Shown here: one piece after another, positions 150-58,442 of the stretch
Numbering within the stretch: the first letter of the stretch is position 1
Layout: each line of letters begins with the position of its first letter
NCBI GenBank assembly: GCA_051294905.1
Contig: CM119375.1
Location: forward strand, 26,288,001-26,352,000
Reading direction: 5' to 3'
DNA from: Botryllus schlosseri
Lineage: Eukaryota
DNA: 64,000 nt
The notes under the pieces: model-generated
Database searches by the model: none
The model's input: the letters and a program-made list of their open reading frames with translations, nothing else
What the model was told of the DNA's origin: nothing
Position numbers and translations under genes: made by a program

Positions 150-1257
150 CGACATCATTGGTTACTGTGAGCTGACAAGTGGACACGCCCTCCAGTTTTC
201 CTCCAATCGGATCTTCGAGCACAACGGTCACCGTTTCAAGCGGGTCTTCCAAAGGCACTGGTGGAAGGTGGATTTCGGCTACGCCTTCATTTTCCCCATC
301 CTCAAGCACGGTCTCACCTGCAAATAATATGGATGATATTAGAATGATAGCTACCCGACCATGGTCGTTAGTTATGAAGTATCGGCCTTTTTCAGGGAGA
401 AATCGTTTTAGAGACAGGAGCTCAACAAACGGACTTTTTGTGTAATCTAAAAATAGTACATTGAGCCGAAGCCATATGTTTGCTCCCGATTATTTGAATT
501 TTCATGACATTGACTTCATATTTGATGGAAGCAGTCATGACAGACAATGTTCTCTTCAATTCTCTAGCAGTTGCTGATATTGAAGTTCTGTACCTCAAAG
601 TGATTTTTCAATGTCTTTTCACTGTAGCGAATATTGTTTTTCATGGCCCCATGAATCGAAAAATAGTTACCCAAAGCATTTCAAAATATAATTCTATACA
701 TCGAAATGCCATACAAGGTTTTTCCAGCTGATACTGATCTCATAAGTTTGAAATCGTTTATAAAAAGGGGGAAAATGTTGGATGAGTGGTCCGCTGGAGG
801 TCAAGACACACTCCTGACGCGGACAACAAAGACCGATTTGCAGTAAATATTTGTTATCATCATTTTGTTTTGTGTGAAAATCAGACTTACTGTTTTTTTA
901 ATACTGTTGTTGATTCACAGTTTACTTTATGCATCGATATTACATTGTTATGTATTCCATGTATAATGTGGCAGAAATTTTGTTTAAGTGATTTATCAAA
1001 AATTTGTGGTTCGCCGAAGGCTTGCAGATTAGCGACAAGGTACCCTAAGTTAGCAGAGGTTAACAACCACTGACGTAATCGATTAGTGCGCGTACCGACT
1101 ATTCCCTTGTACGGAGAGTCTGAAGAGTCCGGAGTCAGCTTCCAAGGTACGATGACTCGCCCGTTTGAATGTTTCAGACGCTTTATCGGGATGTATGTCC
1201 TGGTCTGGCTCTGCAGAGCGTTCTGATAACTTTCTTCAAACGCGATAACCGGCAGTT
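150..1257 (-). CDS. Calx-beta 20 (D-like); gene continues left of the window
   Basis: [15 protein letters not shown]...[17 protein letters not shown]...[18 protein letters not shown]...[25 protein letters not shown]; ends at a phase-1 GTGAGA donor with no stop. Confidence 0.9.
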
Positions 1258-4200
1258 CTAAAACATAAAAAAAAATATTGAAGATGGTAACGATAAAACT
1301 GATAACTAACGCCTTCACCGATAACCCCAATATATTCAGACAGTATTTATAGATAAGACATCTAGCTTAGACGCGTTTCCAAAACTTCAGAGCATTTATT
1401 TGAACAGCTCTACGGCCATTGCTATGGTAGGACATGAAATAAACTAGAAAGGTTGGACCTCAATACAGTTGCAGATCGTACCTAACCCGACGTGCTAATT
1501 ATCCAGGTGCAATTGTGATTAATATTCATACTTGATATAAATATTGATAATGAAAAAACTCTACTCCATTCAGATGCCATTCACTTAGTGTTTTACCTAT
1601 GTCATTGTGCACGACCACGGTACAAGACTTGATGTCGCCCAGTTTGGCGTCGTGAGATTTCGGGGAATTCAGAACAACTTGGAAAGTTTCCTTTTCCACA
1701 TCGGTTGGCACTTTTGACAGCTTGATTTCCAGATGGGATTTCTTCTCTCCGTCATTGAATACCTCAACGCCAGTCAACTCATTGTAGTACGAAGCATCCG
1801 ATTCTGTCTTTGTACTCCAAGGGACACGCACACGACCTGGAAAGCGCATTAAATTCACACACTGGTACCATCAACGATATTTCTTTTTTAAGAATATACC
1901 AGCTTTGTAATGTAACTACTTAATAACCACAGAACCATAAGACACTGGTAAGAGTGCATTATATGGGGATAACTAGCCTACCTTTAATAGCACAGAGCTG
2001 GCATTTTTCTAACATTGAGATATCTATTTAATCAACCAGACAGAAATACCGCACTTTGAAAATTTAGCACTAAAAAGAAGCCAGTAACTACTCATACTTA
2101 AGGTTTGGAATATTTGATCTATGTTGTACAGACAACGTCTGTCATTGTGACAAGCTCCGATATTATATATGCAAATGCCGACAATTGTTTGTAATTTCAA
2201 GTACATCTCAAAATCAGGGTTTTAACCAAGTCACAAGGTTACGAGTCACAAGTCAATTTGACTTTTATAGTTTTGACTCGAGTCAAGTCCAGTCATTTTT
2301 AATTCACCACCGAGTCAAGTCCGAGTCAGGAAGTAACGGGTCGAGTCGGAGACATAGTACTAAGACTCTAGTCCGAGTCCAAGTCAAAGCGTTGACTGTT
2401 CAGTATCAAACACAAGTCAGGTTCAACACACATCTGTGAAACTCTTCAGTGATATCAAACGCCTCCGACTCATAATATACTATTTTTCTCACTGTAACAT
2501 GTTTATTATTTTTCAATTAACGGTCTTGATATACAAGACTTGAATAAGTCATATAGAATGTGTTAAATCACATAACTCAGTCGAGTCATGCACAATGACT
2601 AAATAAAAGTGGAGTCAATACACAAATTGACTCCAGTTGAGGTGAGTCATTTTCTATTATCCAGTAGGCTAAATGACTCGAGTCAACTCGAGCCAACCAA
2701 AATTTAAGACTCGGGTCTGGTCATGATATCCCTGCTTGTCCTTCACTGACCTTCGGTACGTTTCGATCTTGTGATTGGCAACGTTAGCACTTTATCGGAT
2801 TGTTTCACTTCGCAAACCTCATCTTGGAAACTGATGTGCCCGTACGGTACGTCGTTTTCAATGCTCACAGAGCATTCGCAATCTCCAGTCAGGAACGCTC
2901 CGCCAAGCGGCTGTCCTAACACCACTCTGCAAGACAGAATCATGGAATAAGGTAGCGTGCAAAGACAAAACACTCCCCAACACCAATTTTCCTTAATGCA
3001 GTGGTTGTTAGACGGTGTTCATAGACTCATTCATAAAATTTCCAAATTGATGCAAAGTAGAGTGGTTCAAATATTCTTCTTTTCAGATTTTATTAGCTAT
3101 TCGATAAAATTGTTAAGCGGCCTGAAAAATGATAGTATTGACGGAGGGCATTTTGATAATTAACAATTTAGAGACGTAATAATGACAACTCTCTCTTTAA
3201 CGCATCAACCTAAAGTGGGCATAAGTTATAGAACATGAACAGCCAATCTAAACTATCACTGATCTAATACCTATTATTTACATATTCCACATTTGCAGAG
3301 GCAATATCGCTATTTAACTATACGACTATTTCGTATAAATCGACCAACCTGATTTTTTCTGCCTCATTCTCTTGCGGTGATGTCGGAACATCGATTTCGA
3401 TGTGAGACTCGGATTCTCCATCGTTGAATTTCTCTTGACCTTTCATACCCTAAGGTTAGAAGCAGAATATTCGCATAGTGCAAAGTTAATCATCAGCTCG
3501 AGCCTGCATAATCGATCAGTGCTGTGCCCTATCCAACTTTTATTACATGAGTTGTTGATAGTAAATAGCTACCGTATGGGAAATCGTACAGGTGATTGAT
3601 TGCAGAACTGAGTTTGGTTGTGTTAGCTTCTTTGCACAACCTAGCTGTCAGAGCACTGTTTTATTACATAGGCATTGCGATGGATGTAGGAGAATTCGAA
3701 TTGCTCCAACTAACTTAAATAAACACGGGTTTTCATGGAACCAACACTTTTAGTAGGCTTTACAGTTCAGTGAACATTCTCTATTCAGATTAAAAGGTCA
3801 TGTTTCATCTCTGACAGTGGAATTTCGTACGTCATATACTGCTGAATGCCTTTTACATAAATCTTAACAAGTTTGTCCCAATGTTATGTCCTTACTTTTC
3901 TGTTGTACCCTTTGCACATGCCGCGATAAAGAACAAATTAAAATGTTTGAAGAAACTCTTGAAGGTATATAACTTCAATAAACAATTGAATAATATATTG
4001 ATATTGGAATATAACCGAATATTTCAAGCTGATGCTTGTCAGGGGTAATCGTCAGCAACTAGTAGAGAATTGAAAAGAACATTCCATATCATTGTCATAT
4101 TTGGTGTTGGTGGTACAATTGTTGATATACGAAGTTCTTTTCAATTCTCTACTAGTTACAGACGACTGCCCCTGACAACTGTTAGACGAAAATATTCGGG

Positions 4201-7200
4201 TTTAGTTCAATATCAATACATTATTCAACTGTATATTGAATTTAAATGTGGTTTACTACTATTATTTGGAAAAAGTGGGCTTTTGATGAAAACCTAAATA
4301 CTCTATTCTGGTACCTTCCTGTGTTTTCATAGCGCGATCAACAGTCAAACAAACAAAGCACCAGTTCACCTGATACGGACTGCCATAAGTAGCGTCTTGA
4401 ATGCTCCAAGGCACCACAACCCTTCCCGTAGTACCAGTCTTCCTGATAAGTTTCAGCTGCATTTTTTTCTGACTCTGGCGGAAGTGAATTTCCGGCTCCT
4501 CAAAGCAGATTTCACCATTTTCTGAGATTGATAGTTACATTCAGGTATTTTAACGTTGAAACATAGATGGTGGTTGATTTCCTACTAGGAGTGCGTCTCT
4601 TATATTGTAGAAGGCTAGGACCCAAAGTTGAACTCATTGTGCTTTGAAAATATTCCACAGAAGACCTTGTCGTGACCATCTAATACACTGAATCAATGAT
4701 GTTTTGTAGCAGTATGGACAAGTATTTTGATAAAGCTAGTACATCCAAACAAAGAGGGACAACACAACAAAAGTCTAAGCAAAATATTCAATGATCGGTG
4801 CCAAAGTAATAGAAATTTCATTGTGCATCTTTATGGTCATGTTAACGTGGCTTTTCAGTTTTGACTGGAATTAAACGCTGTAAAGGAGAGGAACTGCTTG
4901 GAATTTACTACTAAATGCGGCTCCGGTTATCCTCAATGCAATCTTGTTTAAGTCATACAAACAACTTTGGTCATAAGTGTGCCGCGATCGTTTTATGATT
5001 TTTTAATGTGCTACGAGCTGAAAAAGTTTGGGAGCCGCTGGTTTACATGGTATACGCCAGTTGTGCTAATAATATGATATATTTGGCAGATTTGAGTCTG
5101 AAATTATGTATACGCTGACTTAATCCTGGTTCTGATCGACATTAAATGAGTCTGACCTCTGACATGATTGGTGATAACTTCCGTCTTTGTCTTTTCTCCC
5201 AATTTAGCCCCGCCTTTTGTGTCGCCCAAACAGACGTTAAACGACGTGCTTCCACCCGAAGAATCGTTCTGTATTGGGATTGTGATCTTTTTGCTGAGAT
5301 AGAAAGATTGCTTTCAACAAGACTTACAATAACTACGATCAAATCTAGGAGCAAGCCAAGTCACAAATTAAGAACTTGAAGATCGTTACAGATATTAGAA
5401 TAGTATATTCGATTGTATGATGTAGTTCTGCACCTCAAAGAAACTCTTTTATCACAGATATTTCGATACTAAAAATGAATGACAAACTATTCAATTAGGC
5501 TACACAGTTGGAAATAGAAGTAATTCTGGAAAACCATAATCGAGTTCAAACTAGAAAAGAAAGTTCCATTACATCACACAACTGCTATATGTAGGTTAGG
5601 GTTGTTCAAAAGTAACCGTAGAAGCGAAGCTATTGGAGTTAATTAGAGCAAATCTAATAAATTCAATTCAATTTAAATTAAGTAAATAAAATAAAAATAT
5701 TGCTTTTAAATTTTACAGTTAACCTCATGTTTTCAATTTGTTTAAGCAACAAGCATAATGTTGGTAGAAACAAAAATGTCAACTTGTGAAGAAGTGATTA
5801 AGTATATAGCATCCAAAGAAAGCATATTTGCTAGCCTCATGAATTTTGCAATCAGTGTGAGTTATAAAGTTACAGAGATATTATAGGACAATATCTTCAT
5901 TTGTGAGCTTTGCAGGATGATTTGTAAATATCCATTTGATAATATAAACAATGTGCATAAACTTTTCAAATGCAATCACACCTCTTCTCTCCCGGTTCAA
6001 AGCTGAGATTTCCTCTTCCGCCTCGGTAATGCTTCCCTCGAACAGCTGTCAAGTCTTCCGCCTCCCAAGAGACGTAGCATTTGTTGTCTGTGGCCCCGGT
6101 GCGGACAACTGGCACCGCAACTTCCTTATCCGTTCCAGCGACTTCAACTTTCTCCGTTGCCATCTCAAGAGTTCCACCCTCTGAAAAGTATGTTGGTAAA
6201 TAAGACACGTTCGGTGACTGATTTGTAACGAGTGGAACATACATTTGAAGGCTCAAATTACTACGTGGCCGAAGAATTGAACAACTACAATATTTCCAGC
6301 TTTTCCAAATTACATTGGAATTAGAATTATCACTACACATTTTTATGCATCAGATTAAAATTAGAATTATAGAATTCGCGAAAACTTGAAAATTAAATTA
6401 AATTTCAAAATAGAAAGAAATACATCTAAAATCAAGTTCAGTTCATACCAAATCAGACTACATTCCCATAAGCACGATAAGGGAAAATATGTGCACACCA
6501 AGTTTGTATCGTGCTCTCCTACAGCATTTTCAGGAAATCATACTACATTTAAAATGAGAGCATCGACAAATTTCACTAATTAGATTAGAATTACATTACC
6601 GGTATTTCACCCTATTTAGTTGGAACTAGTCAACTAGATATATCTAGTTGTCCAAGTCTGTTAATGGGTAACTGGAAAAGTGACTTTTCGTGACATCAAT
6701 CAGGCACTGCAGATTATAGTTTTTGCGGATATGAGGTTCAATATGGTTCAAAGGAAATCAATTGAGAATGGCAAATAATTCAAACAGGGATACCAAACAA
6801 GACTGGTGATGAGACTAAAAATAAAATTATAGAATTAATATTATTATAATCAATATATAATATAAGCAAAAATGCGTACTTTATGGAATTATCCAAAAAG
6901 TAAACTTGCTTACCAATATCATTATTCACCGTCACCGTGGAAGTGGTCTCATCTCCCAGCGCCGCACCAGACCCAGTTGGCGTCATCAGTACCACGTCGA
7001 ATTTTGTGGTATCGGTGTCTTGCGGTGCAGACTCCAACGGGATCTCAAGCGTTTTCTGACCTTCGCCATCCTCGAATACCAACTAAATAACGATGCAGCG
7101 TCAGCACAGAGTCAGAAAACTAGAATTTTCCCAACTTTTCAGAATTAGATTAGAGTTTGAATAATAGCTACACTCTACACAGCTTGTTCCAATTTGGATT

Positions 7201-10200
7201 AGAATTACAATTACAGAATTCGCAAAAACTTGGAAATTGAAGTAAATTCCTATTTAAAAAGAAATACAACAAAAATTAAGTTCAGTTCGTATGAAATCAG
7301 AGTACAATTTCATAAACACAAGAATAGCAAATGCATGAGCAGCAAGCTTGGCTCGTTTCACGCTATATAGTTCTCCTGTAGCATTTTCATAAAAAACAGG
7401 AATTAGAATTAGATTAGAACTATATGAAGCGCATTTTGCTTTAATTGGTGTAATTAAACAACTAGAATTACTTAGTTGTAAGAGTCTGATGATTCGAGTA
7501 CTCAAATGTCAACAGAGTTACAATTCGATTCTGGCCATCCCTGATCATTAGATGTGTTGATATCTTACTTTTCCTTCAATCGAATCATAATTGCTTGGTT
7601 TCCGTGCCGCTTTCGATTCTTGTATCTGCTCCACAAACCAAGGCAATTCAACCTGGCCTTTACGTCCGCGCGTTCTCATAACAGTCACGAGAGCGTTGCC
7701 GGCGCTTTGATTTACTTCCATCTCCGGTGTTGCCATGATGAAGATTCCTGGGCCTTTTACAAGAATTTAAGGAGTAAGAATATATGATCAGAGATGGTCA
7801 AAGTAGTCAACATTTCTACCCAAGATGAAATTGAGGTAACGGTTTAAATTTCTACTCAATTACAAACAGAAATATTAATTTCTAAAATATTGCAAATGGT
7901 CTGAAAAGTACTCAAGTCAGCAGTCTGGAAAAGCAGATTTGCTCCCCCATTTCTAACTCAACCATAGACAGTAGGGTTGCCATATCTTTCGAAATCCGTA
8001 GAGGACACATTTTACAGGCTGAAAAATTACTACAGCGATCGAGAAAACGGGTGATTTTGAAATTTATACAGTTAATGTCATTGGGTTGACTAAAAAAAAG
8101 GTAATTTTTCAAACTCGACTCCTGAAATACCCGTCTTTTGTCAATTCGGCCCACATTTCGAGTAATTCGTGGTATTTCAAGCTAAAACCGAGTAATAATT
8201 GCCAAAAAGGAGGACATTTGGGCGAAGGGATGACATTTCTCGACTAATTCAAAATGACTAAAGACTCTACAAATACGTAAAATCTTAAAAAATACATTAG
8301 CTGCTTCTGTGATGGCTATTTTATGTGGTATTTATGACGATCCCAGGCATTAAAGAAAGAAAGAAAGAAAGAGCAAGAAATAGGGAAGAAGAAAGATTAA
8401 CATAGAAGAAAACTGTGACATCGGGCGTAGGCCGAGGTGGATGCCAGTCTAAGAGACGACAAATGGTCGTTCGGCATCCTCTTATCTCCTCATTACATCA
8501 AATTGTGTGTCTTGTATATCGCATTGTACATTGTCTTGGGCAGATGAAAATGAATCTGTCGAATATTGAATCTAAACATTTCCCAAAACTACCGTGTACT
8601 TATCAAAATCGAAAACACAAAAGACAAGTAACATTGTTATAAAATATACTAGGAGTGGAAGTAGACTAAACTACTAGAGAAAAAGATCTAACCGGCTAAG
8701 TTATCAATGGCGACAGTCGCTTGCGCGTTGGCACTCAGCTTTCCAGGTCCCTGTATCGAATGCAGTTCCACTTGGAATGAAACTCGATCGCCTGTGGGAT
8801 CGTTCAGAATGGGGATGAGGATATTTTTGGCGTCCTCGCCTGCGTTGAAATCAACACTGCCCCGCTCTCCGATGTAGTGCTGAAGGTCTATGGCTGTGTC
8901 GTCTGAGAGTGGAAGTTCAAATATATGCCTTTTATGCAACCATAAAGAAAATAATGCTGGTTCCGTATTTTTTCGATTGCAACTGTTTTAATTTTGAATA
9001 TTTGACTGGATTTGAAAAAAATAGTATTTACAGTGAGAAAATGAATGTTTTTTACTCAAATAATTCAGCTTCTATGCGTTGCAATTGAGCCAACTTTGTT
9101 ATGCGTCATATTTTTAGACAACCTAACAATTTCATGAGGTAGCCAGTAGTCTTTGAAATTTTTCCTTTTTTCGAAATAAATCCAAAATTCTCTCTTATAG
9201 CTACGATTCTACAGGAAGAAATTGAGCTAAATTTGTTGTAGGCCTACAGCATGTTTTTAGTCAACCCAACAATTTCATCAAGTAGCCAGTAAAATCTGAA
9301 AAATAAGCTATTTTTGAACAACATTACTATTCACTCATACATTGAACACTCCAACAGCAGGTTTTAACTAAAGCAGTAAAAGATAGGGTTGTTTCAAATT
9401 TTCTGGCTATTTGATAAAATTCTTAGGTGGGCTAAACAAAAACGCTGTACACCAAATTTGGATCGATTTCAACGAGTTTAAGCTATTAGAGTTGGATATT
9501 GGTTGAATTTACCTTCAAAAATTCCTGTATATCCCATGAAATCGTCAAGTTATTTACTAAAACGATGCATTGAAAATTCAGCACAATTCCTACCAGTAGA
9601 AACAAAGTTAATGGAGTTTAAAATCTTGGATGAGAAAAGTAGTATTTACGGTAGGTAATTATAGAATTATTATTGACAAACTCAAAAAAAATCACTTCCA
9701 CAGGTAGTAATTTAGTCAAACTTGTTTTGCATTGGTTTTTTAGAAAAATTTGAAAAATTTTGATTTCGATATTTTCATAATAAATTTAAAATATTCGAAC
9801 TTAAATAGGTTCACCTCTAGTCGTTGGAATTGAATCAAATTTGGTGTTCTTGTTCTTTTAATCATCCTCACAATTTTATTAAATGGCCACAAAAATTTGA
9901 AAAAAGATATTTTTTAACAACCCTAACCAGCATACATACCATACAACACAAGACTCACCAATCATTTGGTAACACACAGTTACAGATCGTCCCTTAGGGC
10001 CTTCGCGTACAATGGGGAGAAGTAAATTGTCGACATCCCCTCGTGTTTCAAATAGCGGTTGAGGGAATCCAATAGTGCACTCCACGTCATTCACCAGCAA
10101 AATTTCGGCCTGATTCGGCTCGCCAAGCTTACCGCGCCCTCCAGGTGGTGATAATGATAAGGTGTAGCTGAAAGATTTGAAAAGAACCATATGTACGTCT

Positions 10201-13200
10201 ATTCGCCTCAACAATTCAAATTTTTCATGCCAGTAACGTTATATTGGTGATACGACTGTTGATAGAGAAAGTTATTTTGAATTATCTACTAGTTGCTGAC
10301 GAAAAACCCCTGACCAGTGACAAACAAAAATATCATTTCCAAATTAATATATCATTCAATGGTTTGCAGACCTGCATGATGCACATTGCACAGATAGCCG
10401 AAAAGCTAAAAATACTTGATCTTATTTCAATATGAATATATTATACAATGATTTTCAGAACCGCATGCAGACTGCTATGTCGATCTCAAAGAACTTTTGT
10501 TTACCACTTTTTAAGAGTTACTGGGGCGGAATCAGGAATTCATGCTAACAAAATAAAATATAGAGTGTACTTCTGCAATGTCATCTATTTATAAACTATT
10601 TCGCAAGCACTTTTTAAACTTTGACATTGTCAGGCTATATGTAATTTGCATCAGTGCTCAAATATAAAACGATACCTTTCTTGATCGTTTTCGGAATCCT
10701 TTGGTAACGGCACTTCTATTTTGGCAGTTGTTTGTCCAGGGTTGAAATCAACGACACCGCGCTTGTTGTCCAGCATCGTAGGTACGATGGAATTCGACTT
10801 GATCTGGATGTAAACGGAACCAACCACAACATAAACATTCCATCATAGTAAAGTTGTGGGCCTAGTTTGGATTGCTTCTAAAGCCTGGGTTCTTAACCTA
10901 GCATTCGCGGACTAGTTTCAAGCAAGGCATAGTATCGTATGGTATGGCATGAAATAAAATTTCGGTATGGAATATGGTAATGCGAAAGCATGGTATGGTA
11001 TGGAAATTTCCAAGTATGGTATGGAAATTATTAATTAATTTCATCCAAAACAACTAGAATGCAAAGGCAGGAGAATTTCCTTACTGCAAAATTAGTATAG
11101 TATCTCATATATTGGGTAAATGAGAAAGCATGTAAAAGGTATCAAAAATGGTATGGAAGAATATTGCTATGGTACAGAAATTTGTGAGTGTGGTATGGAC
11201 GCACGCAGTGAGGCAGGTATGGATTATGGAAATTCCCGTTCCATACTATGCCCCGGTTTCAAGGCTCCAAGAAAAGCCATTGTTAAAGCTATATAACTAC
11301 ATTGTTCTTATTTATAAAATCTGGCCTTATTTTACAGTTTTGACTCATGACCATATTATCTCTCATATTCAATGCTACAGATGTAATATGCATTATAAAA
11401 ATTCAAGAACCCCTGTTCTTTGAAAAAAAATCATGAATGATCTTAGTCTTTGATTATGAGAAGCCAGGTTACTACTTGGCAAATCTTACTTTCCATGAGA
11501 GGGAAGCTTCACCTTCAGCGCCATTGGTTCTCATAACGGTAACGCAGCCACGCCCCTCACTTTGACAGAATGAGTAACTTTCTGATGACAAACTGAATGT
11601 ACCCACACCTGAAATAGATGATGCATGGAGATCAGATTATATGAACATATGATCTATATCAGTGTCCAGTTGCAAACTTTTTATCTATGTTGTAACTATG
11701 AAGATGTAACAAATGATTTGCATACCGGACACAAAATCAAGTATTTTACAACGCAAATTTTCATGACTGGCTGTCTAGTAATGAAAATGAAATTGCAAGT
11801 TTTCATTATGATTACATTTAGAAATATATAATCAATCTCAGAAAATCTATCAAATTGGCATGTAAAATGCAAAATTACAGATTCTGAACCATTATTCATT
11901 TATACCAAAATCTTTGTGTTTAGCATAGCTTCATTGGTACACCTTAGGTACATGTCAATTTATGCAGGAAAAATCGGTAAATTAAATTCATTTTGTGAGA
12001 ACAATGATATGCTAGCCAAAGCTAGAGCAAAACCGCCTCGGAGCATGCTGATGTTGAGTGCTCAGCGTAGCAAACCATGGATACTTACTTATGTCGTTGT
12101 TGACTGTCACAAAGCAATGCCTGGCATCACCGAGGCTGGCTCTTCCTGTTTTCGGATTTTCAAGCTCTACGATAAATTCATCTTGTTCCGCGGATTGCAA
12201 ACCTTTAGGTACCTGAAGTTGGACGCCTGAAAAGCAATAATTATATAATATATATGCATAAGAAATGGAGTCCAAATGTTAAAATTTATGTTATTATGAT
12301 CAGAGGGAATTTACCATTTTAGAATAGGCCTACCTACCTTCAAGTTCATGTTCGAAAGACCGCAATAACGATTCGTGGCCAACTAAACAATACATAATGT
12401 GATTTTTGGTGGCAAGTTTCAGACATTAGCCTGCATGAGTTTAGACGTCTGCCTACGAATAGGGGTGGAATTGTGTCTAAAAGCATTCATCGCACATACA
12501 TAAATGACGGAAAACATACCTTGCTCCGCTTCACCGTCTTTGAATGTGATAGTATCATTCATTCCTTCATATCGTGACCTTGGTTTACCCGGCGCACTGG
12601 CTATTCGCCACGGCAACACAACTTTTCCTGTCTGCCCTTGCGTTCTTATGACCGGAATCGTCAAGGTTCCTTCGGACTGTTCACATTCCACGTATGGTTC
12701 TTGGAATTCAATTACACTTGGCACTGAAAGGAAGTTCAACCTAGTCAGAACGGGCGGTGATACTCTGACACGCCTGGCCTAGGCCAACATACAATGATGA
12801 TATCAAGTTCGATAAGTGAAATGAAGATTTTATTTGGCCCCAACCTATGGATATGAGACTGATTCTGTGTAAAATGACGTAAGGGAATTGCTAAGCGCCA
12901 TTGACCAATCATGCACCACCAATTGCTTATTTCACAATGGTAGATTGTGAAAATTCAACAATCTCACATCGGCCAAAAATGGCAAAGTTCAACTATCTTG
13001 TTCATGATGTCAACACATATCATGAAATGCAGAGAAATAATGCAAAAAATAAGAATGAGCATAGTTTTATTACTTTGATACAAAAGTAGATAGTTATAAG
13101 ATGATTTTTAAATTTACAAGAGAAATGGAGATTTTCAAATTTTTTTGAAATATCAGGTGGCTCTTTTTTAACACAAATGCCAAAACCACTAAATTTCGTG

Positions 13201-25200: not shown

Positions 25201-28200
25201 TAGCTAGTGCAAGTCTGGTAGAAGCATAACAAAGCGATGCATTACCAATGTCATTCAGAATGACGATTTCTGCCTTTTTCTTTTTCAGATTGATGTCGTC
25301 CATGTTGCTTTCGTCAGTCCAGTACACGCTTTGCAGAATTAGCTTCATGGATACTTGCGGCTCGCTGATTTCCATCTCGCTCATGTCCAATTGAATGCTG
25401 CCTTGATCAAATCCATCCGGTATATTGATCTATTGGAAATGCAATACTGGCGGTTATCGAGGATCTAGGGATCTAACACGTAGAAATTTAAACTGCAAAA
25501 GCAACCTGAGAATACAAGGCAACTCTTCTATTACTATCTGTAACTGCTCACCTTCCCCATGGGCTGGAGCTGTCCGTCTTCTGAAGAGGAGCTCGATATT
25601 GAACCAGTCGAATATCGGAAGCTGTCGGTGAAATCTTTAGCTCGTTTGGGAGCACATGTCCATTCCACTATGCAGTCGCCGTCTCCCGATGATTTATGAA
25701 CCGGAATATTGACGGTCTAAAATGGAAGCATCTATAAATCAATGGTTCTTAACCTTCAGTAACTTAGAGAAAGCCTTACGCTAATCTGCAAGTATTTGGG
25801 AATCGCTAATGATTGCTTAATCACAAGACAATAGAACCACCACAGTACACATCAAATACATTACTATAGAATACCAATGCACAAAATGAACTGGGCATCA
25901 ACAGAGTATTAAAAGGACAAAACCAATAAAATATCATTTCCACGCAAACAAAAAACAGAATGATGAGTATTCATCACAAATCTGTACGACTTCCGATGTT
26001 TTCTTTCAAACACTATTTTGAAATGCAAGGCTTCGCCATGGAAAGTGCCATCGTATTGTTTGGTCAAAATACAGCACCAGTTGTTCAATTGAAAGTGAGC
26101 TATTAAGATAAAATCGAAATTTCATAATGACGGGATTTTGAGTTCGAACCCAACCTCACGATGTGTCACCACAAGTCACAATTTTGCAATTGATTGCAAG
26201 TAATTGCCTGCAGCCAATACAGAAGTGATATCACAAATCATATGTCTAACTTGAGTGCGCATCTTGACCTACTGCGGAACCCGCGAGAATGGCCCAAGGA
26301 GCCTCGGTCAAGAACCACTGGCTTAGCATGGCCAGCCAACCTATAAATTCACAATAGTCACCTTTGCGCTGCGCCTTACGATGTACTTTGATTTCAAAAG
26401 TTCGACCGTACAAGCTCCAGATGGTGCAGCAGCCATTACCGGCACGATGGCGTCTGTGCAAGTAATGCAACTATTACATATGCCACGATTTTAAAAAGAG
26501 TTGGACGACTAGAAAATTCTCTGCTTTTCCAAATTGGATCAAAATTATTGCATTTGGAAACGAAATACATCAAAATTCAAGTTCAATTTATATCGAATAA
26601 AAGTTGGTTCTTATAAGAATGAGAATATTAAATGTCTGTACACTGAGCTTGGCTCGTTACACACAATACAGTACTCCTGTAACATTTAGAGAAAGACAAA
26701 AATTTAAATTAGAATTAAAATTAAAACATATAAACAGTTGACGAATTAGATTAGATTTGAATTAGTGTACCGGCACTTTGTTCTAATCAATCTACCTAAA
26801 AAACACTTGTCTAGTTGTCAAGTCTGATTGTAAGTGGAAAGAGGTGTTTACCTATTTTACTGCAGATTACAGCGACTTCTGCGCATCCGTACTCTCCAAT
26901 TTTAGGTCCCCCTGGTGTTGACTTCAAGGTTACCAAAAACGTAAGAGGCAGACCAGTTGATTTAGGATCGTTATAGATCGGTATTCCCACTTCCTTCGCT
27001 GCTTCTTTCGCCTCAAATACGATGCTGTTCATTCCGCCTTGAATTAAATTGGTGAGACATTTCATTAAAGTTTTTCACAATATTGCAGCATTATCCAGTT
27101 CACATGTCCCAGTTTGTGGGAACAATAATTACATGCATATGAAATGATGTACTTCCAGCCTTCAATGCACGTTTACGAATATAAGTGCCACTGTGACGTA
27201 AGGTATTTAGGACATACATCCCAAAGATTGAAGTATAAACAGCACATTCCACGCCAGTGCAAGCATGTTTCGAGAACAGACACTTACAACGATTTTCAAG
27301 CATGCACTTCCTTGATTAGTCAACATGCAAGCAACAACCTATCCTGTGTAAAAAACTATAATGGTGACATGATCTATACGATCTCTGTTTCATTAGAAAG
27401 TGTTAGAATTGACAATTATTCAGTTGACCAAGCACATTTTACGGAAACAAAAAATATCATCTGTACAACCGGGGCCCCGGTAGGCCCCGGTACAACCTAC
27501 AAATCTCTCTCTAGGTCGCTTTATTTGGTGTATGTCCTCCAACCTTTTTATGTCGAACATCGGTATTATTACACACATATTTCAAAGTTTCGTGTTTCCA
27601 TGGTTCCAATGTGAATTCCATGGTTTGTAATCGTGATTGTTACGTCATACATCATATTGGTATCCTTTTTGAAATTGTTTGAACCATTTTAGTTTGCTGA
27701 TACCTCTTAAGAAGAGGTCTTATAGTCGAGACAAAATGTATTCTTGGAATGTATATTGTGATTAAAGTTGAGATACTATAAAAAGAATGGAGACGACGCG
27801 ACTTGGAGAAATGCTCACCTTATTAATAACAGGCATCACTGTACACAGTTGCGCACTATCCATCGTAAATGTACATTGTACATGTACAACTAGCTGCATT
27901 TAATACAGACACGCAATTTCTTATCAAGTTATATCTAGCAATGTCGATACATTATATGTACATGGAATGGCAATAATCCAGTAGCATCCAACATCAAGGA
28001 ATACCTCTGTAATGAGTGCCGCTGACAGCAGTTCCATCCGACGTTTCGTACATGACAAATGCAGCCGAGTCCAAGTTGTTTTTCCTGGAAACCAGCAACG
28101 TAGCCATTCCAGAAGTTGCAATCGCGTCGATGCGTGGCTGCGCGAAGCTCACAAATCCCGTGTCTGAAAAAAGAAGACGCTGTTTTACGACATGAACAAC

Positions 28201-31200
28201 ATATGTCCTAAACTAGTTGCCGATGCCACACAAATGCAGGAGGAAGCCTTGAGCTTCAAAACAGGCCAGTGGTTCGCAGCCATTCATGACCTGGGAAACA
28301 CCTATGATATACAATCCTTCCCAAATTAGATTCGAATGGGAAAGATAGCTGCAGATTTTTTCCAACTTAGATTAGAATTAGAATTACTGAACTTGCAAAA
28401 ACTTGGAAATTGATCTAAATTCCGAATTAAAAACAAATTTTGTTATTGCGTATGTGTATTATTTTATGCTCATAAATATGATAATTACAAATGTACACCA
28501 AGCATGTCTCGTTTCGTACTATACAGATCTCCTGCAGCATTTTCAGGAAAACCAGAAATTAGATTACAATTAGATTACCGGCGTGTCGTTCTAATTAATC
28601 TAATGAGACACCTAGAATTATCTGGTTTCTTCAGTCCGATTACAAGTGATGAACATCTGGCTACATGCACTAAAAATGTTGAAACTACTGACCAGCTATG
28701 AGGAACACCAGCTAACTAAACACAACCATAGAAGCTACCTTCCTCTCCAAAGACGGTGACAGTCGTTTGAGTTTTAACACCAAGCTTTCCGCCTCCGGTG
28801 GGCTTCATCAGGCTGATAACGAATGTCAGCATCTGTGCCGGCGGAACTTCCTTAAGGATGAGCTCCATAGAATGAGTGATTTCTCCGTGTGAAAAGTCAA
28901 CGGAACCCGTGAGGGATGCAATATCTGAAATGAACATAGAATATTGATAAATCTGTGATAACGGAAGATTTGCACATTGGCTGGATAAGGAATATATGAG
29001 ACTGATCAAATGAAAATACGAATTAGTAAACTCGAAATTGCAGAATGTATTTTGATGTCATTAAATGATCATATTGCTCCAGACATAGCAGCAATAAAAA
29101 AAATTAGTGCAAAGTTCCATGAGGTTGATGAGAAATATTTCTAACCGGATGGCAGTTGTTGGCTTGACTGTACAATCCATGGTATTGTGACATTTCCGTC
29201 AGTTCCCAATGATCGCACAAGAGGTATGTAGCTGATAAGCGGCCCTGGTGAAGTCTGTCTCAAGACAATGGAGTTCTTTGCAAATTCGAACACACCAGGC
29301 TCTGAAATAAACCACATATCAATGTATATGGCACAAATGTCCTGAGTAGCATTGATAAGATTATTCATGTACACCAAAAACTTTGATGAATAGATTAAAA
29401 GTAAACATCATTAATAATGCATAAGCTTGATACAGTCAACTATACACCTATAACGGATATTGCAAAAAATTCCATCAGTGAAATACAGCTGCAAGACTGA
29501 AGAAGGCTGAAGAAATAGCTTACCGTCATCTTCTATGATTGATATCGTGGCAATTTCTTGTGCAAGTTTGGTGTTCTCGCTGGGCTCGTACAAGCGAATG
29601 ATAAATGAACGGCCATGTTCGTCGTAGTCGTTGTTGTCGATAATTGGCACGTTAATAAAAGCTTCAGTCACCGCGTTTTCAAATGTCAAAATGCCCTGAA
29701 AGCAACGAGTAAACAAAAATGAGAATACATGTACAACTATAATCGGGAACGAGAATTAGGCAGGCTTGATTCCAAGATGAAAGCCATATCAGAATTAATT
29801 ACCATATGACCTTACAGCAACTTTAAACCACTGCAACATTTATTGATGCTAAATGTATATGTTCAATTTTTAACATATAAAGGTGCTTCATAATTTATTT
29901 GCAAGACTTGTGAGACTCCCTAGTTAATGTAAAGTTTCCTATATCTTTGGCACAGCCATGGGCCAATTTCAGGGAAGGCCATGTGTTCATTTGCTTTTGA
30001 GCCATTCTTTAATAATTATTAAACATCAGTTAGTACCTTACTTGAAGATGTTTTGACGAGTGTTACAAAATAACTATTCCAGGTCTTGCAAGGTTCAGAA
30101 ATACTGAAACCTTGGCCGTTGATGCTAATGAAGTGACTCAATATGGGATGTTTTGAATTTATATTTTATGAGATTCGGTACCTGTGATGCTTCATAATCC
30201 TTTCCACCATAGGCGGTGTCGTCTTCTGTACGCCATGCGACCATACAGGTAGCCTTTGTGCTTCTGGTTCTCATGACAGGTATTTGCGCAATACCACAGT
30301 TTTCTGAAATGAAATCATGTGAATAATCGATATAGGCCCAGAGCTGGTCAGAAATGAAGTATTTCTAGGTATATATTCGTTTTATTCCAGACCAATTCTG
30401 TCTTTACCACATTTTCAATGGTGCCTGTATCTACTAAGAGCGACTTACCCATGAAAGGATATGCTGCTTTTGCAAACTGCAATACTGAGCATTCTTCATT
30501 GCATAGTACTGTCACCATACAGTGAGAGAGATCTAGAGTGGCGCCGCCTTTGGGGTCTTCAAGTTCGACGTTGAAGGCTTTTTCAGCGTCATCGTATATA
30601 ACGTCCGGGATCAGCTCAATATCGACGTGTTTTGTAACCTAAAATGAAAAAGAAAGTAATTCAGAGGATGTCGAAGCTGTCACAATAAAAAACGAATAGG
30701 GAGTTGTATATCTTTTGCCCTTTATGTTTTTGCTGCATATAAACTGACTCATGATATACATATAGGCCTACATACACACGACCTGTGCAGATGCATACCA
30801 TAAGTGCATGATGTGCATATGCCGCTGGACAAGGAAGATGCAAAAATAGCCTTGAAAACTTGAAGCCATGGATACCAGTTTTACTAATTATGTCCTATGA
30901 CGCTTCACCATTATGCTATCTTGTCGGTTCATGTGCATCAATTCATATTTACCCCCAACTAAAACAGCACTAACCTCTCCATCATCAAATTCGATGATTC
31001 CCGACCCTCTCCGGTAATGCTTGCCCTCAATGGCAGTGATGTCACGCGTGAACCAACGCACTGACACCTTGCCATCCATACCGATTGTTCGATGAACTGG
31101 AACTACGGCAAACTGATCGTTTTCTTTGAACACGCAGCTCGGTTTGGGGAATCCAATAATGCCAGCATCTAGTATTCACAGATTAAGATTTAACAAACAA

Positions 31201-34200
31201 ACAAACAAACCTCAGAATAACATGAAACAATAACTTCATATATTATTGACGAGAAGCTTTCTGACTTACTCCAGACTTGTACAAACTACTGAATTTTCAT
31301 ATACGAAGCTAGTATTAGAAGTAACAGCCTTTAAAAATGTAAACTAAACTTAAAACACCGCTAACTAATAACTAATAATACGAATTACTGAATTGCAGAA
31401 GAAAGAAGTAATGTTGAAGATAGAATGGGGATTTCAAAAGGACGTAGTTTTGAGTTTGAAATGTGGGTATTTCGACCCCCAAAGCCCAGTCCCCATCTGC
31501 GCCACTGCTCGTAGTGATCACTCCTGGCAAACAACGGCTACAACAACATCGCAGAACAGAACACCGGTATCATGATTCATGCAAAACAATGACATATGGT
31601 TTTTCTAGTTGTGTGGTAAGTAATTTGTTAATGTACCTATACCTATACCTATACCTATAACTAGAGCTACTCAAAAAACCATGCGTTAGTTGACCGCCAA
31701 CTAATTAGATTATCAGTTTGAAGAAGTCTGACAGACAGCATCAGTGTAATAAATACTTTAATTAATGAATTAATGAACAATATAAAGTTTGGATATCATA
31801 TTAAAATTTTACTATGAAAAAGCGCACGCCGATACACACCTTCATCTTTTATGACGATGACTTTGGTTCTTTTCAGGCCGAGCGCGACTCCTTTTTCTTG
31901 GTTGTAAAGTTCAACCCAGAACATGATTTCACGTCCGGTAAAATTGTGTATCAACGGAATTTCGATGCTTGCAAATTCATCGTTGTCTTCAAATCTAAAC
32001 AAGGATATCGTTCAAATTACTGCTATCCTTAACAGAGTCAATATAAAAATATGTATAGGGACTGTAGATTGTAATTCAAGCGATGATGTATACGTGTTTC
32101 ACTATCACGGACCAATCCAGTTCAATCAAGAGCCTGTAAGTTCAGGATAGGGATTCGCTTTGGCAAGACCTTGAAAAAAACATAAACACCAAGTGAAGAA
32201 AACGTCACTTCACAAATTTAAAATCCAGAATAACGCAGTGACAAAAAATCTGGATACTAGATATTATATGTTTCAAATATTAGATGAATACATCAGGGTT
32301 TTCATTGAAGATGCAAGCTCGGTTTCATCGGATGGGCTCTGGATAAAATGACCAACATTGCAGTAACGATGACTTACGTGAGTTCACCACTTCCCCAGTT
32401 ATATTCTCGGTAGTCATAATCAGTCTCATCCACAGTATGCAGTTGGCTGCGATTTCCATTGGGCTCGCTGTAGGCTTCGGAACTTTGACTGGTTGCAATT
32501 AGCGGCTCCATTTCGATTGTCTGTCCGCTGGCGCCCTGAACTCTGCAAGTTGTATGTGTATTGTGAAGATTGGTTTTTGAAGATTACTCATTATAATATA
32601 GCGTTAATGTTTAATACCGTAATTAGACACACAATTTTACAATTTTAATTTATCTCTGCTCAAAAAGCAATCCATTTGATCATGGAATGGGGAAACAAAA
32701 TCACCGAAAGACTTGATAACATATTCTCAGCCAATGGAAAAGTCAGTGGGGACTGTAGCCTACCAATTTATGTATGTGAGTTAACATTTATATGAAAGTA
32801 CCTGACTATAGTACATGCATCGCATACAAACTTGAACACATATCGTTGTTATATTTTACATTAAAAGGACACCACAGTGTACATATAGTATAGACAATGA
32901 GTTCTTAACCAGAGTTCACACACACAAACCACAGGGGCGCACTGCTGATCAAGACAGACACACACACACGACTCATACAGAAGAAGTTACACCGACTAGC
33001 TTAAAATATTGAATAGCATCTTTTTATTTTGTTTGAAAACAATCTTTTAACGGTTTCGTTCTTCTAACATTGTTATTGAATCAAGTACAGTGTGCACCAG
33101 TATTATATAGTATTGTATGTGTTAGATGTGTAATGTAGTACATTTTTGTTCTTGTGACCGGTCCAATATTTGGGCTTCGGCAAAAGCTTGCAGATTACTG
33201 TAAGGGTTCGCCATAGGCAGAGGTTAAGATCCACCGCTACAGACTCCGTATCACAGCGTTGGCATTTCAATTTTCATTAAATAGCAATCGTGCGGAGGTT
33301 TACTTCACAAAATCAAGCGGATATACAGCAAATTCGAAATGACGGATGAATACATAAATTTTTAGAATTTTGCTCGTATTCACTCACTGTTTGACCTGAC
33401 GACGTTTTCTAGTCATCGTTCCCTCGACGCCTTCATTCAAAACCTCGAAATCGTCATCAGCAGCGGATCCTGGGAACACAATATTTTTTTCAGCACTGCC
33501 GCCAACAAGGGGGCCGACTTATGGAATGAGAAATTCGGTGCTGCAAGACTTATGAATAATGATATATCCCAAAGCAATTAGCATATACTTTGCCCAATGC
33601 AACAGTGTTATCGCTACATTCGATATTTTGCTATACCTAGCTTCAACGACATTCACAAAAGTTGATTAACTACAATCAAAAGGAATCCAACCGGAACACA
33701 TGAAATGTTTTACATACCAGCGTAAGTCTTCCATTTCAGAGTAGATTTTCCCTCCAAGAAATTTCGACGTACAGGAATAACTGCAAGCTTTGCACTTCTT
33801 CGTACCAGGTATTTTGCCTTGATGAACTCAACCACAGTACCTAAACAAATCATAGCGATATTATGAAAGAGATATGAACAAATTGTACATACAGGACTAA
33901 GTTGGGTTAAGATGCAAATTTTTTCACAAGATTTCGCATAAATAAGAGTACTGGAGAAATATTTACAGCGACATGTCATGTTACACTATATCAGGAATAT
34001 CACAATATCATTATTTTCATTCTATATGTACTGACGCTGACATAGATACCTCAGAAAAGAGCACAGATTACTTGAAATAACCCTTGGATTAGGACAGCTC
34101 TTGTTTTGTTGAATCCAGGATTAGGTCGAATCATTATATAATATTCAAATTTTCGGAATTTTCCGAACGCCAATTAATACAGATTTTTGGATTCGATACA

Positions 34201-37200
34201 CAATCAGAAAACTCAGTCAGCTTCAGTTCCTTGTTCCAGTTTTTGTAAAACCATGCTAATATTGCCACCACGTATTTATGATTTTATGACTTGATGATAC
34301 CAACATGCCAGGAGTTTAGCCATAACAACAATTTTTCTCACATGACTGAGCACTGAATCAACTGCTACTATTAGCAAACTGACAGTATTGGTGGTGGACA
34401 GCTGGTATATATATTCTTTTTGGAAGTAGACATGGTTGGCTATGCGAAATGAAGTGTACCAAATAATCATAGCAAAAATACATACCAGCCGCAATTCCCG
34501 GCAGGAGCGGTATCATGGCGGCCTTGGCCAGTTGGTCTATGTTGTAGTTTCTCTCTTCCTGGCGATCGATGATATACACACAGCATCTCCAGCAGCATAA
34601 CAGGATCAATCCGATGAGAAGCACGAGCAGGATTATGAACAGGATGATGAGAAGCGAATATTCCGACTTGCAGCCTAAAGAAAATTACTTACCGATATAA
34701 TTGACAGCATATAAGTATTTATATGTGCAATTCACACATAGGCGCTCAGAGGTCACTGTGGCTATTCAAGTATAGGTAAAACGATACAAAGTTAGGCCAA
34801 CATTACTGCATGTTAAAAATGGTTTGAAATATCATTTGATAACTAGCTCTAAGGAGAAGGCTGGGTAGACTTTAGGACAAATTCAATGATTAATATTTGG
34901 TTATCACAAGCAATCACTTCCAAATTTCAAGTTTCTGGTTATCACCCAGTTTTACACAGCTGTCTGGCAGATGTGAACATTTTGATTATGAGAATGATGC
35001 AAATATTTGAGTGTCATTGTGTTGTCAACGCCTCATCAATGGTAGTTGGCGTATTTTAGTCAACCATAGCTGTATAATATCACAATATCCTTGTATTAGC
35101 TTTTATCATGATATCAATGCCAGTTAAAACAGTGTTGCCAAGGCTAAACCATACATATTTGCATGTATACAAATCGATTATATCACAAATGGATTACGGT
35201 GTGAACCAGGTAAGGCAAAAAATCTCTGCCACTTTTTACAAGAGGAATGGAGGCAAATTGAACAAGATTTGGCAAGGGATAGCTAGCTGAGAAATGAACA
35301 AGTTTATTTCTTACACAACATCATCTTCCCGAACTTATAACTCTCGAACTTATGAACTTCAACTTATTCATATTATACACTATACACTGATAAGATATAG
35401 TCCACATACGCTTTTCCTTTTCTGCAGCTATATCCAATGTTCCGTCAGCGGTTTTCCTGTATTTGAAATAAAACTTGCAGTTGTCCGTTTCGTCCAAGGC
35501 AGCACACATTTCTTGGGAAGTCTGTTGTGCACTTTCTGCAAGGATACAATCACTTTATTAATGTCAACAAATTCAAAGTACAGGCCAAAGCCTTCAGTAT
35601 GTAGATTTCTGCAGGGTGTCTGTTTCCAGGGATAAAAACAGCCTGCATTTAAAAAAAAATAGATCAAGTACCAGTGTCTCGCTAATGTGACACTTTTTCA
35701 GTTGGATGATTTTAGTCTAATGAGTGCTGTTCATTGAAAGATACTGCAGATTCGTAGCATGATCAGAAATTGACAGGAACTGTTCCTAGACACAAACAAC
35801 AACTGCCATCATATTTAATTAGTTATTCGTGGGTCAGAGAGAGCCACAGGAAGGCTAGCCAGGAGCTGCGTGCGGTTTTAATAGCTGCGGTTGGGAATCA
35901 CTGCTCTACAGCAATGCCTTTATATACCAAACTGTATAAACTGATATTCAAGAGAATGAAATTGCTTACAAAAATTGTACAATTAATGGCTGTTAAGGAA
36001 TAACTTTTTTCCGGATTACGGGTTTTCACTGATTAAATTGTTAGGTTGCCCACAAAAATGCTGCAGACCAAATTTGGCTCAATTCCAGTTGGTAGGCTGG
36101 ATGTGAACAATCTAGGATGCATTCATGGATGATAATGTCATTAATCTTTAGGTCCACACCAGGGTTGTAATGACTCGAGTCATGACTCGACTCGAGTCCG
36201 ACTCGAGTCACGATTTTTGGATGACTCGACTCGACTCGAGTCATTTTCTCAAAATACGAAAATGACTCGACTTGACTCGAGTCAATCTGTGTATTGACTC
36301 GACTTGGACTCGAGTCATTGCGCATGACTCGAAGCAAGTCATTGACTCGAGATTCAGCCGGCCAAGACCGACATTTCATTGTAATTTCGAAGCCAACACA
36401 CTATTGGGATTTCGTTTGTTGGTACTGGTGCTTGAAAATGCGACCAGAAACTGCTAAAAGCGAGGAAAATTGATATATTATAAATTCGAACCATTCAATA
36501 TCACCAAACAGAGTTTAAAAAGTGGGTTTAGGAAGACTTTAACTGGAAACTGAGCAGTCAACACAATGACTTGGACTCGGACTCGAGTCATAATACCATG
36601 ACTCGGACTCGATCCTCTGTTCGGTGACTTGGACTCGGACTTGACTCGGTGGGAATTGAAAATGACTCGACTTGACTCGAGTCAAAAATATAAAAGTGAG
36701 ATTGACTCGTGACTCGGAGCCTTGTGACTTGGTCACAACCCTGGTCCACACAGACTACATTGTACTCTATGGAGTTCTGATGGATTTTACGTCATTTGAG
36801 ACCATAATTGCTAATATGACTTGCAGATTTGAGATTCTTCGTTTTTTCAAATGGATCATGAGTTGAAATGACTTGCTAAACCATACAGTTGTTTTGACCT
36901 GGAGTGATCGAATCTTTTTCCGCTGCGATGATATTGTCCACCGGTATGCCCTCTTGCGCGCAATATTCGTCGCATGTTGCGTTTTGAGGTCCCGTTCCAA
37001 AAAAATTGCACTGAATGCATTCCTGAATTCTGGCGCATGTCGGGCAGTTCTAAATGGATGAAAAAATATTACATCTGCAAACATGTTTTAATTGGCGAGT
37101 ATCTGATTGTAAAGAATTCATGACAAATTTGACTAAATTCCAACCGGTGAAAGAAAAGATACTGAATCGAAAAATTTTGTTTGCACAAATTGTATTAGAT

Positions 37201-58280: not shown

Positions 58281-58442
58281 CTAGATGATGGAAGAGTTTG
58301 AAATGACATCACATGTACAAATAAATAAATACAAAGTTATTGAATTTTAATAATGTTCGAAAATTTCAAAATATTTATAGCAATTAGTCGTGGATGAGAC
58401 GTAGCCTTCTATTCTCAGTTCAACTTCTGTATAAGGTTTTGG

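Follow-up and report, generated by a model that had tools for sequence, protein, structure and literature searches.

A probable beta-4-type integrin beta subunit in Botryllus schlosseri with a cytoplasmic tail of at least 20 tandem Calx-beta domains

Integrin beta subunits usually end in a cytoplasmic tail of ~50 amino acids carrying NPxY/NxxY motifs for talin and kindlin, a pattern from which beta-4 and beta-8 deviate. The tail of beta-4, a hemidesmosome subunit, runs to ~1000 amino acids and comprises one Calx-beta domain and four FnIII domains, with the two FnIII pairs and the connecting segment binding plectin, BP230, and BP180. To our knowledge, beta-4 is the only integrin with a long, domain-rich cytoplasmic tail, and the gene described below bears on the origins of this tail and of hemidesmosomes. 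Here, we describe a locus on the minus strand of a 64,000-nucleotide stretch of Botryllus schlosseri DNA (GenBank assembly GCA_051294905.1, contig CM119375.1, positions 26,288,001 to 26,352,000; the whole stretch is referred to as the window, and positions are counted from its first letter). The locus probably represents one gene for a beta-4-type integrin beta subunit whose cytoplasmic tail is made up entirely of Calx-beta domains. We put the probability of this reading at about 85%, and we are slightly more confident still of the architecture as such, that is, of an ectodomain and a transmembrane (TM) helix spliced in frame to a chain of Calx-beta exons. We know of no other long intracellular Calx-beta array.

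Two earlier studies bear on the existence of such a fusion outside vertebrates. Ewan et al. 2005 grouped Ciona Ci_beta5 with vertebrate beta-4 and mentioned, as data not shown, short beta-4/NCX-like open reading frames (ORFs) within 10 kb 3' of the gene; its extended tail could not be determined, there being neither expressed sequence tags nor an exon model (PMC1145181). A 2024 survey of B. floridae and Ciona gene models listed Calx-beta/Integrin_B_tail as a vertebrate domain-shuffling pair, found in ITGB4 (PMC11788884). The Botryllus gene contradicts the vertebrate-specific status of this pair, and split or truncated gene models are the probable source of the 2024 result. An integrin/Calx-beta fusion, expressed and conserved in several marine animals, is present in non-vertebrates too, where its form is far more extreme. 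The present gene also supplies the answer that the 2005 Ciona study could not give, as to whether there is a long tail. In the full-text literature, we found no description of an integrin tail with multiple Calx-beta domains, although automatic genome annotations may already hold such models. Protein searches, using residues 1–700 of the orthologue P0152 (see below) and an alignment that included exons from the window, returned neither a named long integrin/Calx protein nor any protein of the genome to which the window belongs, and the ESM Atlas held no large cluster combining Integrin_beta and Calx-beta without fn3, vertebrate beta-4 apart. That the architecture may be undescribed, as an earlier note on this DNA had suggested, is true only in part: Calx-like ORFs 3' of a beta-4 orthologue had already been noted in Ciona in 2005 (PMC1145181).

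The splice that joins the integrin to the Calx-beta chain is present in RNA, here meaning contigs from public runs labelled with the same species (X1–X18, of which X18 is genomic DNA, with even cover over introns). In run X3, a single 2809-nt contig with a depth of 43 covers 35538–35409 (beta-tail domain), 34673–34483 (TM), 33837–33717, and 33468–33388, and extends more than 255 nt further at both ends. Its joint 33837/34483, leading from the TM exon to the first Calx-beta exon, has GT..AG ends on the minus strand. The same joint is supported in three runs besides X3: in X4 and X6, a contig ending at the first Calx-beta exon carries 17 extra letters identical to the end of the TM exon, and contigs that break off at the TM exon in X2, X4, and X6 extend by 9–14 letters reading the start of the first Calx-beta exon, with allelic differences (RNA and genome differ by ~3–4% overall). 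RNA depth is balanced over the beta-tail, TM, and Calx-beta exons (~38–60 in X2 and ~35–43 in X3) and is zero in the intron following the TM exon. Given this balance and this absence of intronic reads, we see no short-tailed isoform, nor did the seven RNA runs contain any alternative continuation after the TM exon. Transcripts ending soon after the TM helix, which the earlier note had named beforehand as the observation that would speak for separate genes, were looked for in these seven runs, and none was seen. Further RNA joints connect tail exons 1 through 6. The distal part of the array (150–10000) is present in RNA runs at shares of 0.11–0.15, like the proximal part, with runs X1, X4, X6, X16, and X17 shared between the two; this shows that the distal exons are expressed and does not imply their linkage to the proximal part.

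A second line of evidence comes from orthologues on marine metagenome scaffolds. When a profile of the N-terminal halves of the window Calx-beta domains was searched against 1.84 billion representatives, the best 150 matches were mostly bacterial or other giant multi-Calx proteins, and none of these 150 representatives matched the integrin exons. The sole true relative among them, P0080, is collinear with the window and led to P0151, P0152 (Pfam Calx-beta, E = 5e-87), and P0162 as well as to genomic contigs. In at least three kinds of orthologue, the ectodomain, the TM helix, and the Calx-beta array lie in one uninterrupted open frame. On scaffolds L002 (P0152) and L004 (P0214), a single frame, 2189 codons long, takes in the beta-I domain from its middle onward, the EGF domains, the beta-tail, and the TM helix, as well as ~14 Calx-beta domains, and ends at a GTATGT donor. 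More Calx-beta exons come after it; on L004, they include another open frame, at least 2223 codons long, with at least 20 more Calx-like domains. On L003 (P0162), one frame has a signal-like N-terminus, passes through the PSI, beta-I, EGF, and TM segments, and enters the Calx-beta domains; beyond a 75-nt gap there are 1427 more Calx codons and then two further domains. The gene order is the same on L005, a Tara Oceans metagenome scaffold, and among the cluster members is an entry, bearing the name of run ERR1712066, from a catalogue of marine eukaryotes. An adjoining trypsin gene was uninformative as to the taxon of the orthologue scaffolds. Altogether, the orthologues reach more than 35 Calx-beta domains and a tail of more than 4500 amino acids. 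Because of the second giant Calx-beta exon in the orthologue, the tail of the window gene probably also continues well beyond the window edge. The TM and juxtamembrane segment ('LLCCWRxCV..DR') and the first Calx-beta domain align closely across orthologues, and one-to-one domain orthology is limited to domains 1 to 4 or 5.

Within the window, a Pfam scan of stop-free stretches finds integrin beta domains in canonical order from 58.3 to 35.3 kb: PSI, a beta-I (Integrin_beta, VWA) domain in five pieces whose profile positions 4–212 are collinear and which includes the metal ion-dependent adhesion site (MIDAS; DxSxS, here 'DVSFS'), I-EGF, and beta-tail, followed by a single TM helix. This is the complete succession that defines an integrin beta subunit. 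Downstream of the TM exon, Calx-beta matches eight of the nine open stretches tested, with E-values down to 4e-11 on half-domain exons, a partition into Integrin_beta upstream and Calx-beta downstream that agrees with the earlier note. The exon model of the tail (Table 1) was obtained by dynamic programming over AG/GT-bounded open exons, anchored on five RNA-validated exons, with exons 6 and 7 of the chain set from the orthologue alignment; looser, unanchored chains, which used tiny adapter exons or skipped RNA-validated exons, were discarded. The resulting chain has 43 exons after the TM exon, all GT-AG and continuous in phase, and encodes 2412 stop-free amino acids from the TM exon on, in keeping with the 43 in-phase exons and ~2400 amino acids that the earlier note had given. 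Its count of 20 Calx-beta repeats likewise stands by half-domain hidden Markov models (HMMs) built from the window repeats and from an orthologue's domains, which find 20 N-halves and 18–20 C-halves alternating from 33835 to 154. At least 2350 amino acids of tail lie within the window. Domain 1, which has a long acidic insert, and the beginning of domain 2 are encoded by tail exons 2–5. The last exon in view (317–150) ends at a phase-1 donor, and hence, the reading frame exits the window open. The 20 domains are mutually divergent (at most 77 bits in pairwise blastp), which argues that the array is not an assembly artefact, and by their sequences they appear to be old.

Some internal order is visible in the array. 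A faint five-domain super-repeat relates D2 to D7 and D12, D4 to D9, D3 to D8, and D1 to D6 and D11; the "odd" domains D1, D6, and D11 have Ser-rich or acidic inserts, and the distal domains D13, D16, and D18–D20 form a second subtype without the 'T.DGTA' motif. Intron density differs greatly between lineages. The orthologous gene is near intronless (L002 229–6795; L004 2826–9392 and 12725–19393; L003 9980–13762 and 13838–18118), with exons of up to 6.5 kb separated by gaps of ~75–170 nt, compared with ~59 or more exons and a median intron of 590 nt in the window gene.

The TM exon encodes a strongly hydrophobic 19-mer (Kyte-Doolittle value 3.77), followed by basic residues and by a juxtamembrane segment rich in Cys (CCWRCC). 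The window gene and the orthologues each encode a protein with a single strong TM segment, and Cys content is 9% in the ectodomain versus 1.2–1.5% in the tail. From the single strong TM segment, the basic residues after the helix, and the Cys-poor tail, we infer a type I protein with a cytoplasmic Calx-beta array. The typical short (~50 amino acids) NPxY/NxxY tail is lacking: NPxY is absent between the TM helix and the first Calx-beta domain in the window gene and the orthologues, and Integrin_b_cyt had no match in Pfam scans of the window stretches and an orthologue. Because no NPxY is found in this segment, the usual coupling of integrins through talin and kindlin seems unlikely.

The best conserved part of the tail is the membrane-proximal pair of domains 2–3, with 47–61% identity to the orthologues. 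Searched with phmmer, orthologue residues 700–930 match NCX1 CBD12 with an E-value of 6e-23 and the beta-4 Calx-beta domain with 2e-10. An AlphaFold model of the orthologue pair consists of two beta-sandwiches (predicted local distance difference test score, pLDDT, 85), for which Foldseek again returns NCX1 CBD12 (E = 8e-23) and, as top PDB matches, Calx-beta structures throughout; against human beta-4 Calx-beta (3h6a), the model has a TM-score of 0.91, a root mean square deviation of 1.9 Å, and 35% identity. The repeats thus belong to the Calx-beta family (PF03160), seven-stranded beta-sandwiches of ~110 amino acids. We compared the columns of the NCX-type Ca2+ sites, namely, the E that follows strand A, the D within 'T.DGTA', the acidic E-F loop, and the terminal DDD. 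Domains 2–3 keep the first two (E of 'ENC'/'END' and D of 'T.D.TA'). Domain 2 additionally keeps part of the acidic loop and is without the terminal acidic cluster, and domain 3 has retained most of these acidic residues, including a partial acidic loop and a terminal 'EDD'. Close to the membrane, highly conserved, and similar to the CBD12 pair with which Na+/Ca2+ exchangers sense Ca2+, domains 2–3 would be the likeliest module for specific binding or Ca2+ regulation.

How such a protein might work can be suggested by analogy with vertebrate beta-4. At basal contacts between cell and matrix, the subunit would form a pair with an integrin alpha chain, and it would be connected to the cell interior via its long tail. 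The tail may form an extended beads-on-a-string rod of beta-sandwiches, which at ~4–5 nm per domain would measure ~90 nm or more. Like beta-4 in hemidesmosomes, it could serve as a plaque-forming linker, or as a spacer, in the direction of the cytoskeleton, with the NCX CBD12-like domains 2–3 as a binding or Ca2+-responsive module close to the membrane. We propose this hemidesmosome-like linker function tentatively and at less than even odds. An alternative accepts the same architecture and assigns to it mainly the role of a Ca2+-regulated signalling or scaffolding platform like the NCX CBDs instead of a load-bearing linker. It would account for domains 2–3 being the most conserved, for their proximity to NCX1 CBD12 in both sequence and fold, and for their retained acidic residues at the first two Ca2+-site columns, together with the 'EDD' of domain 3; yet at least 12 of the 20 domains are devoid of acidic ligands, signalling alone leaves the need for 20 to more than 35 domains unexplained, and the homologous beta-4 Calx-beta domain reportedly does not bind Ca2+ (Alonso-Garcia et al. 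2009, cited in PMC4030831). We therefore regard a predominantly signalling role as unlikely.

Several observations weigh against a single beta-4-type gene with a giant tail, as set out above. No single transcript spans the whole Calx-beta array, and RNA validation is limited to tail exons 1–5 plus the acceptor of exon 6, with exons 6–43 being predicted. The C-terminus lies beyond the window and beyond the orthologue loci retrieved, so that a putative cytoskeleton-binding element, in beta-4 the FnIII pairs, is not in view: no FnIII occurs within the 2412 amino acids inside the window, and Pfam finds none in the tested downstream parts of L003 and L004. The best match of the orthologue P0162 among solved structures is integrin beta-1 (E = 2e-71), with no beta-4 chain among the matches listed; the putative beta-4-type character is seen in the tail, a greatly extended cytoplasmic domain with Calx-beta. 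Last, most domains do not have the complete set of Ca2+ ligands, and in an alignment of all 20 window domains, at least 12 are without the Ca2+-site acidic residues.

The first of these points leaves room for one gene with shorter products, in which the mRNA ends or is spliced in mid-array, for instance at the phase-1 intron after domain 13 (12089/11608), and domains 14–20 and beyond occur in some isoforms only. The symmetric phase 1-1 exons would permit cassette skipping, no RNA contig bridges the proximal and distal parts, and the giant exon of L001, L002, and L004 ends at its GTATGT donor after a domain that resembles window domains 12–13. The match of this end domain to window domains 19–20 is equally good, however, such that the intron after domain 13 has no certain equivalence to the end of the orthologue giant exon; in addition, the orthologue loci resume with Calx-beta exons directly after that intron, and distal positions are found in RNA at the same shares as proximal ones, with several runs shared. 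On this evidence, a set of predominantly shorter products is quite unlikely.

A pair of neighboring genes, namely, a short-tailed integrin beta and a separate Calx-beta gene linked by rare read-through or trans-gene splicing at the TM-Calx joint, would fit with the absence of a Calx/Integrin_B_tail pair from the gene models surveyed in 2024 (PMC11788884), and in-phase splicing alone is no proof to the contrary, given that 19 of the 44 exons (TM exon plus tail model) are phase 1-1 and could be shuffled or skipped. But the RNA depth is equal on either side of the joint, with no reads in the intron and no other continuation of the TM exon, and because the TM helix and the Calx-beta domains share a single exon in the orthologues, in one uninterrupted frame in at least three other kinds of genome, two genes are effectively ruled out. 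An extracellular array resembling the matrix arrays of ADGRV1 or FRAS1, reached through another membrane topology or a second TM segment, would follow the precedent that the long Calx-beta arrays known to date are outside the cell and could draw on a weakly hydrophobic stretch after the TM helix of the window gene (Kyte-Doolittle 1.6–1.75), but is hardly credible when this stretch is Pro-rich, too short, and missing in the orthologues, where a Calx-beta domain begins within ~12 residues of the TM helix, when each protein has a single strong TM segment (with an N-terminal signal-like segment in P0162) and a Cys-poor tail, and when the nearest solved relatives are the two known cytoplasmic Calx-beta proteins. 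One integrin beta subunit with a giant Calx-beta tail, as the earlier note had proposed, is thus upheld by the spliced RNA at the TM-Calx junction, the single-frame orthologues, and the topology and composition of the chain.

Table 1. Parts of the integrin/Calx-beta gene in the window, in the direction of the gene
Feature	Position	Strand	Basis
PSI-domain exon in open stretch	58042..58308	-	Pfam PSI_integrin, E = 1.9e-5
beta-I (VWA) exons	43715..55208	-	Pfam Integrin_beta, E = 3e-10 to 1e-15; collinear tblastn with P0162 and P0152
beta-I open stretches	54987-55208 (MIDAS DxSxS, 'DVSFS'), 48914-49135, 47209-47679, 46275-46421, 43715-43885	-	
Cys-rich I-EGF exons (~38999-39091, 38347-38481, 37586-37756)	37586..39217	-	Pfam I-EGF_1, EGF_integrin, EGF_2; orthologue alignment
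beta-tail domain exons (36879-37049 and 35538-35409/10)	35409..37049	-	Pfam Integrin_B_tail; RNA joint 34673/35409
TM exon (TM helix and Cys-rich juxtamembrane segment; phase 1 at either end)	34486..34674	-	AG/GT boundaries; hydrophobicity; orthologue conservation
First Calx-beta exon, spliced straight to the TM exon	33718..33840	-	RNA joint 33837/34483 in run X3
Tail exons 2-5 (33469-33388, 32542-32378, 31994-31840, 31168-30975)	30975..33469	-	RNA joints with CT..AC ends in X1, X2, X3, X4, X6
Calx-beta domains 2-3	29524..31168	-	Orthologue identity; phmmer; AlphaFold/Foldseek; acidic Ca2+-site columns
38 predicted exons, rest of domain 2 through domain 20	150..30638	-	Exon chain; Calx HMM; acceptor 30638 RNA-validated
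Last exon in the window, C-half of domain 20, phase-1 GT donor	150..317	-	HMM and exon chain

The surrounding window is AT-rich (GC content 0.34–0.43), and the introns of the gene contain several further features. One intron between the integrin exons encloses an intact ORF of 775 amino acids (51373–53700, minus strand). Pfam gave no match to it; in the ESM Atlas, it scores 0.98 against unnamed animal protein clusters with predicted hAT-type transposase-like structures. It probably represents either a hAT-like element or a copy that has been domesticated. An Ala/Gly/Ser-rich open stretch of 147 codons (41439–41879, minus strand) is situated between the exons for beta-I and those for EGF. The intron separating the two beta-tail exons holds a high-copy repeat (36116–36500) with a summed RNA contig depth in the thousands and with numerous irregular joints and loose ends in the RNA contigs, and translated motifs of the type 'TRVESSH...' recur near 13.3–13.7 kb and 36.0–36.8 kb. 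In the intron that follows tail exon 5, a short stretch of 47 nt (30791–30837) shows very high RNA depth on both strands, with hundreds of reads running into unrelated sequence on either side; it resembles a piece of some abundant RNA or repeat sited elsewhere. An Rfam scan of the window gave no match.

A broader and more speculative possibility, which we consider doubtful, is that these proteins mark an unrecognized class of non-vertebrate cell-matrix junction, built on an integrin with a titin-scale rod (at least 35 Calx-beta domains, more than 4500 amino acids) and a Ca2+-responsive, CBD-like membrane-proximal pair, and that vertebrate beta-4 and the hemidesmosome would derive from it by shortening, FnIII having taken the place of most Calx-beta domains. 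If true, the integrin/Calx-beta fusion would be ancient and not a novelty of vertebrate domain shuffling. The gene also prompts the testable questions of which partners such a rod has and whether Ca2+ is sensed by its CBD-like domains.

The window gene can be compared with several known systems. Long tandem Calx-beta arrays are also present in ADGRV1 (VLGR1), in FRAS1/FREM, and in sponge aggregation factors, where they are extracellular and sit on a G protein-coupled receptor, with chondroitin sulfate proteoglycan (CSPG) repeats, or with Wreath domains; the array described here, by contrast, follows a stop-transfer TM helix and would be cytoplasmic by topology. The CBD1-CBD2 pair of NCX1/CALX is likewise a cytoplasmic tandem of Calx-beta domains and has the 'Y..LENC', 'T.D.TA..G.DY', and acidic-loop motifs in common with it, but the NCX pair is part of a 10-TM transporter, where it occupies a loop and controls transport, whereas here the pair is found within a long adhesion-receptor array. 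Ciona Ci_beta5 is, like the window gene, an integrin beta of a non-vertebrate chordate with Calx-like sequence on its 3' side, and differs in that for the window gene the splice is shown in RNA and the array has been counted. The closest counterpart is vertebrate ITGB4, with which the gene shares an integrin beta ectodomain, a single TM helix, a Cys-rich juxtamembrane segment, the absence of NPxY, and a very long tail with Calx-beta; unlike ITGB4, it has at least 20 Calx-beta domains in at least 2350 amino acids, and within the window this tail is built of Calx-beta without FnIII.

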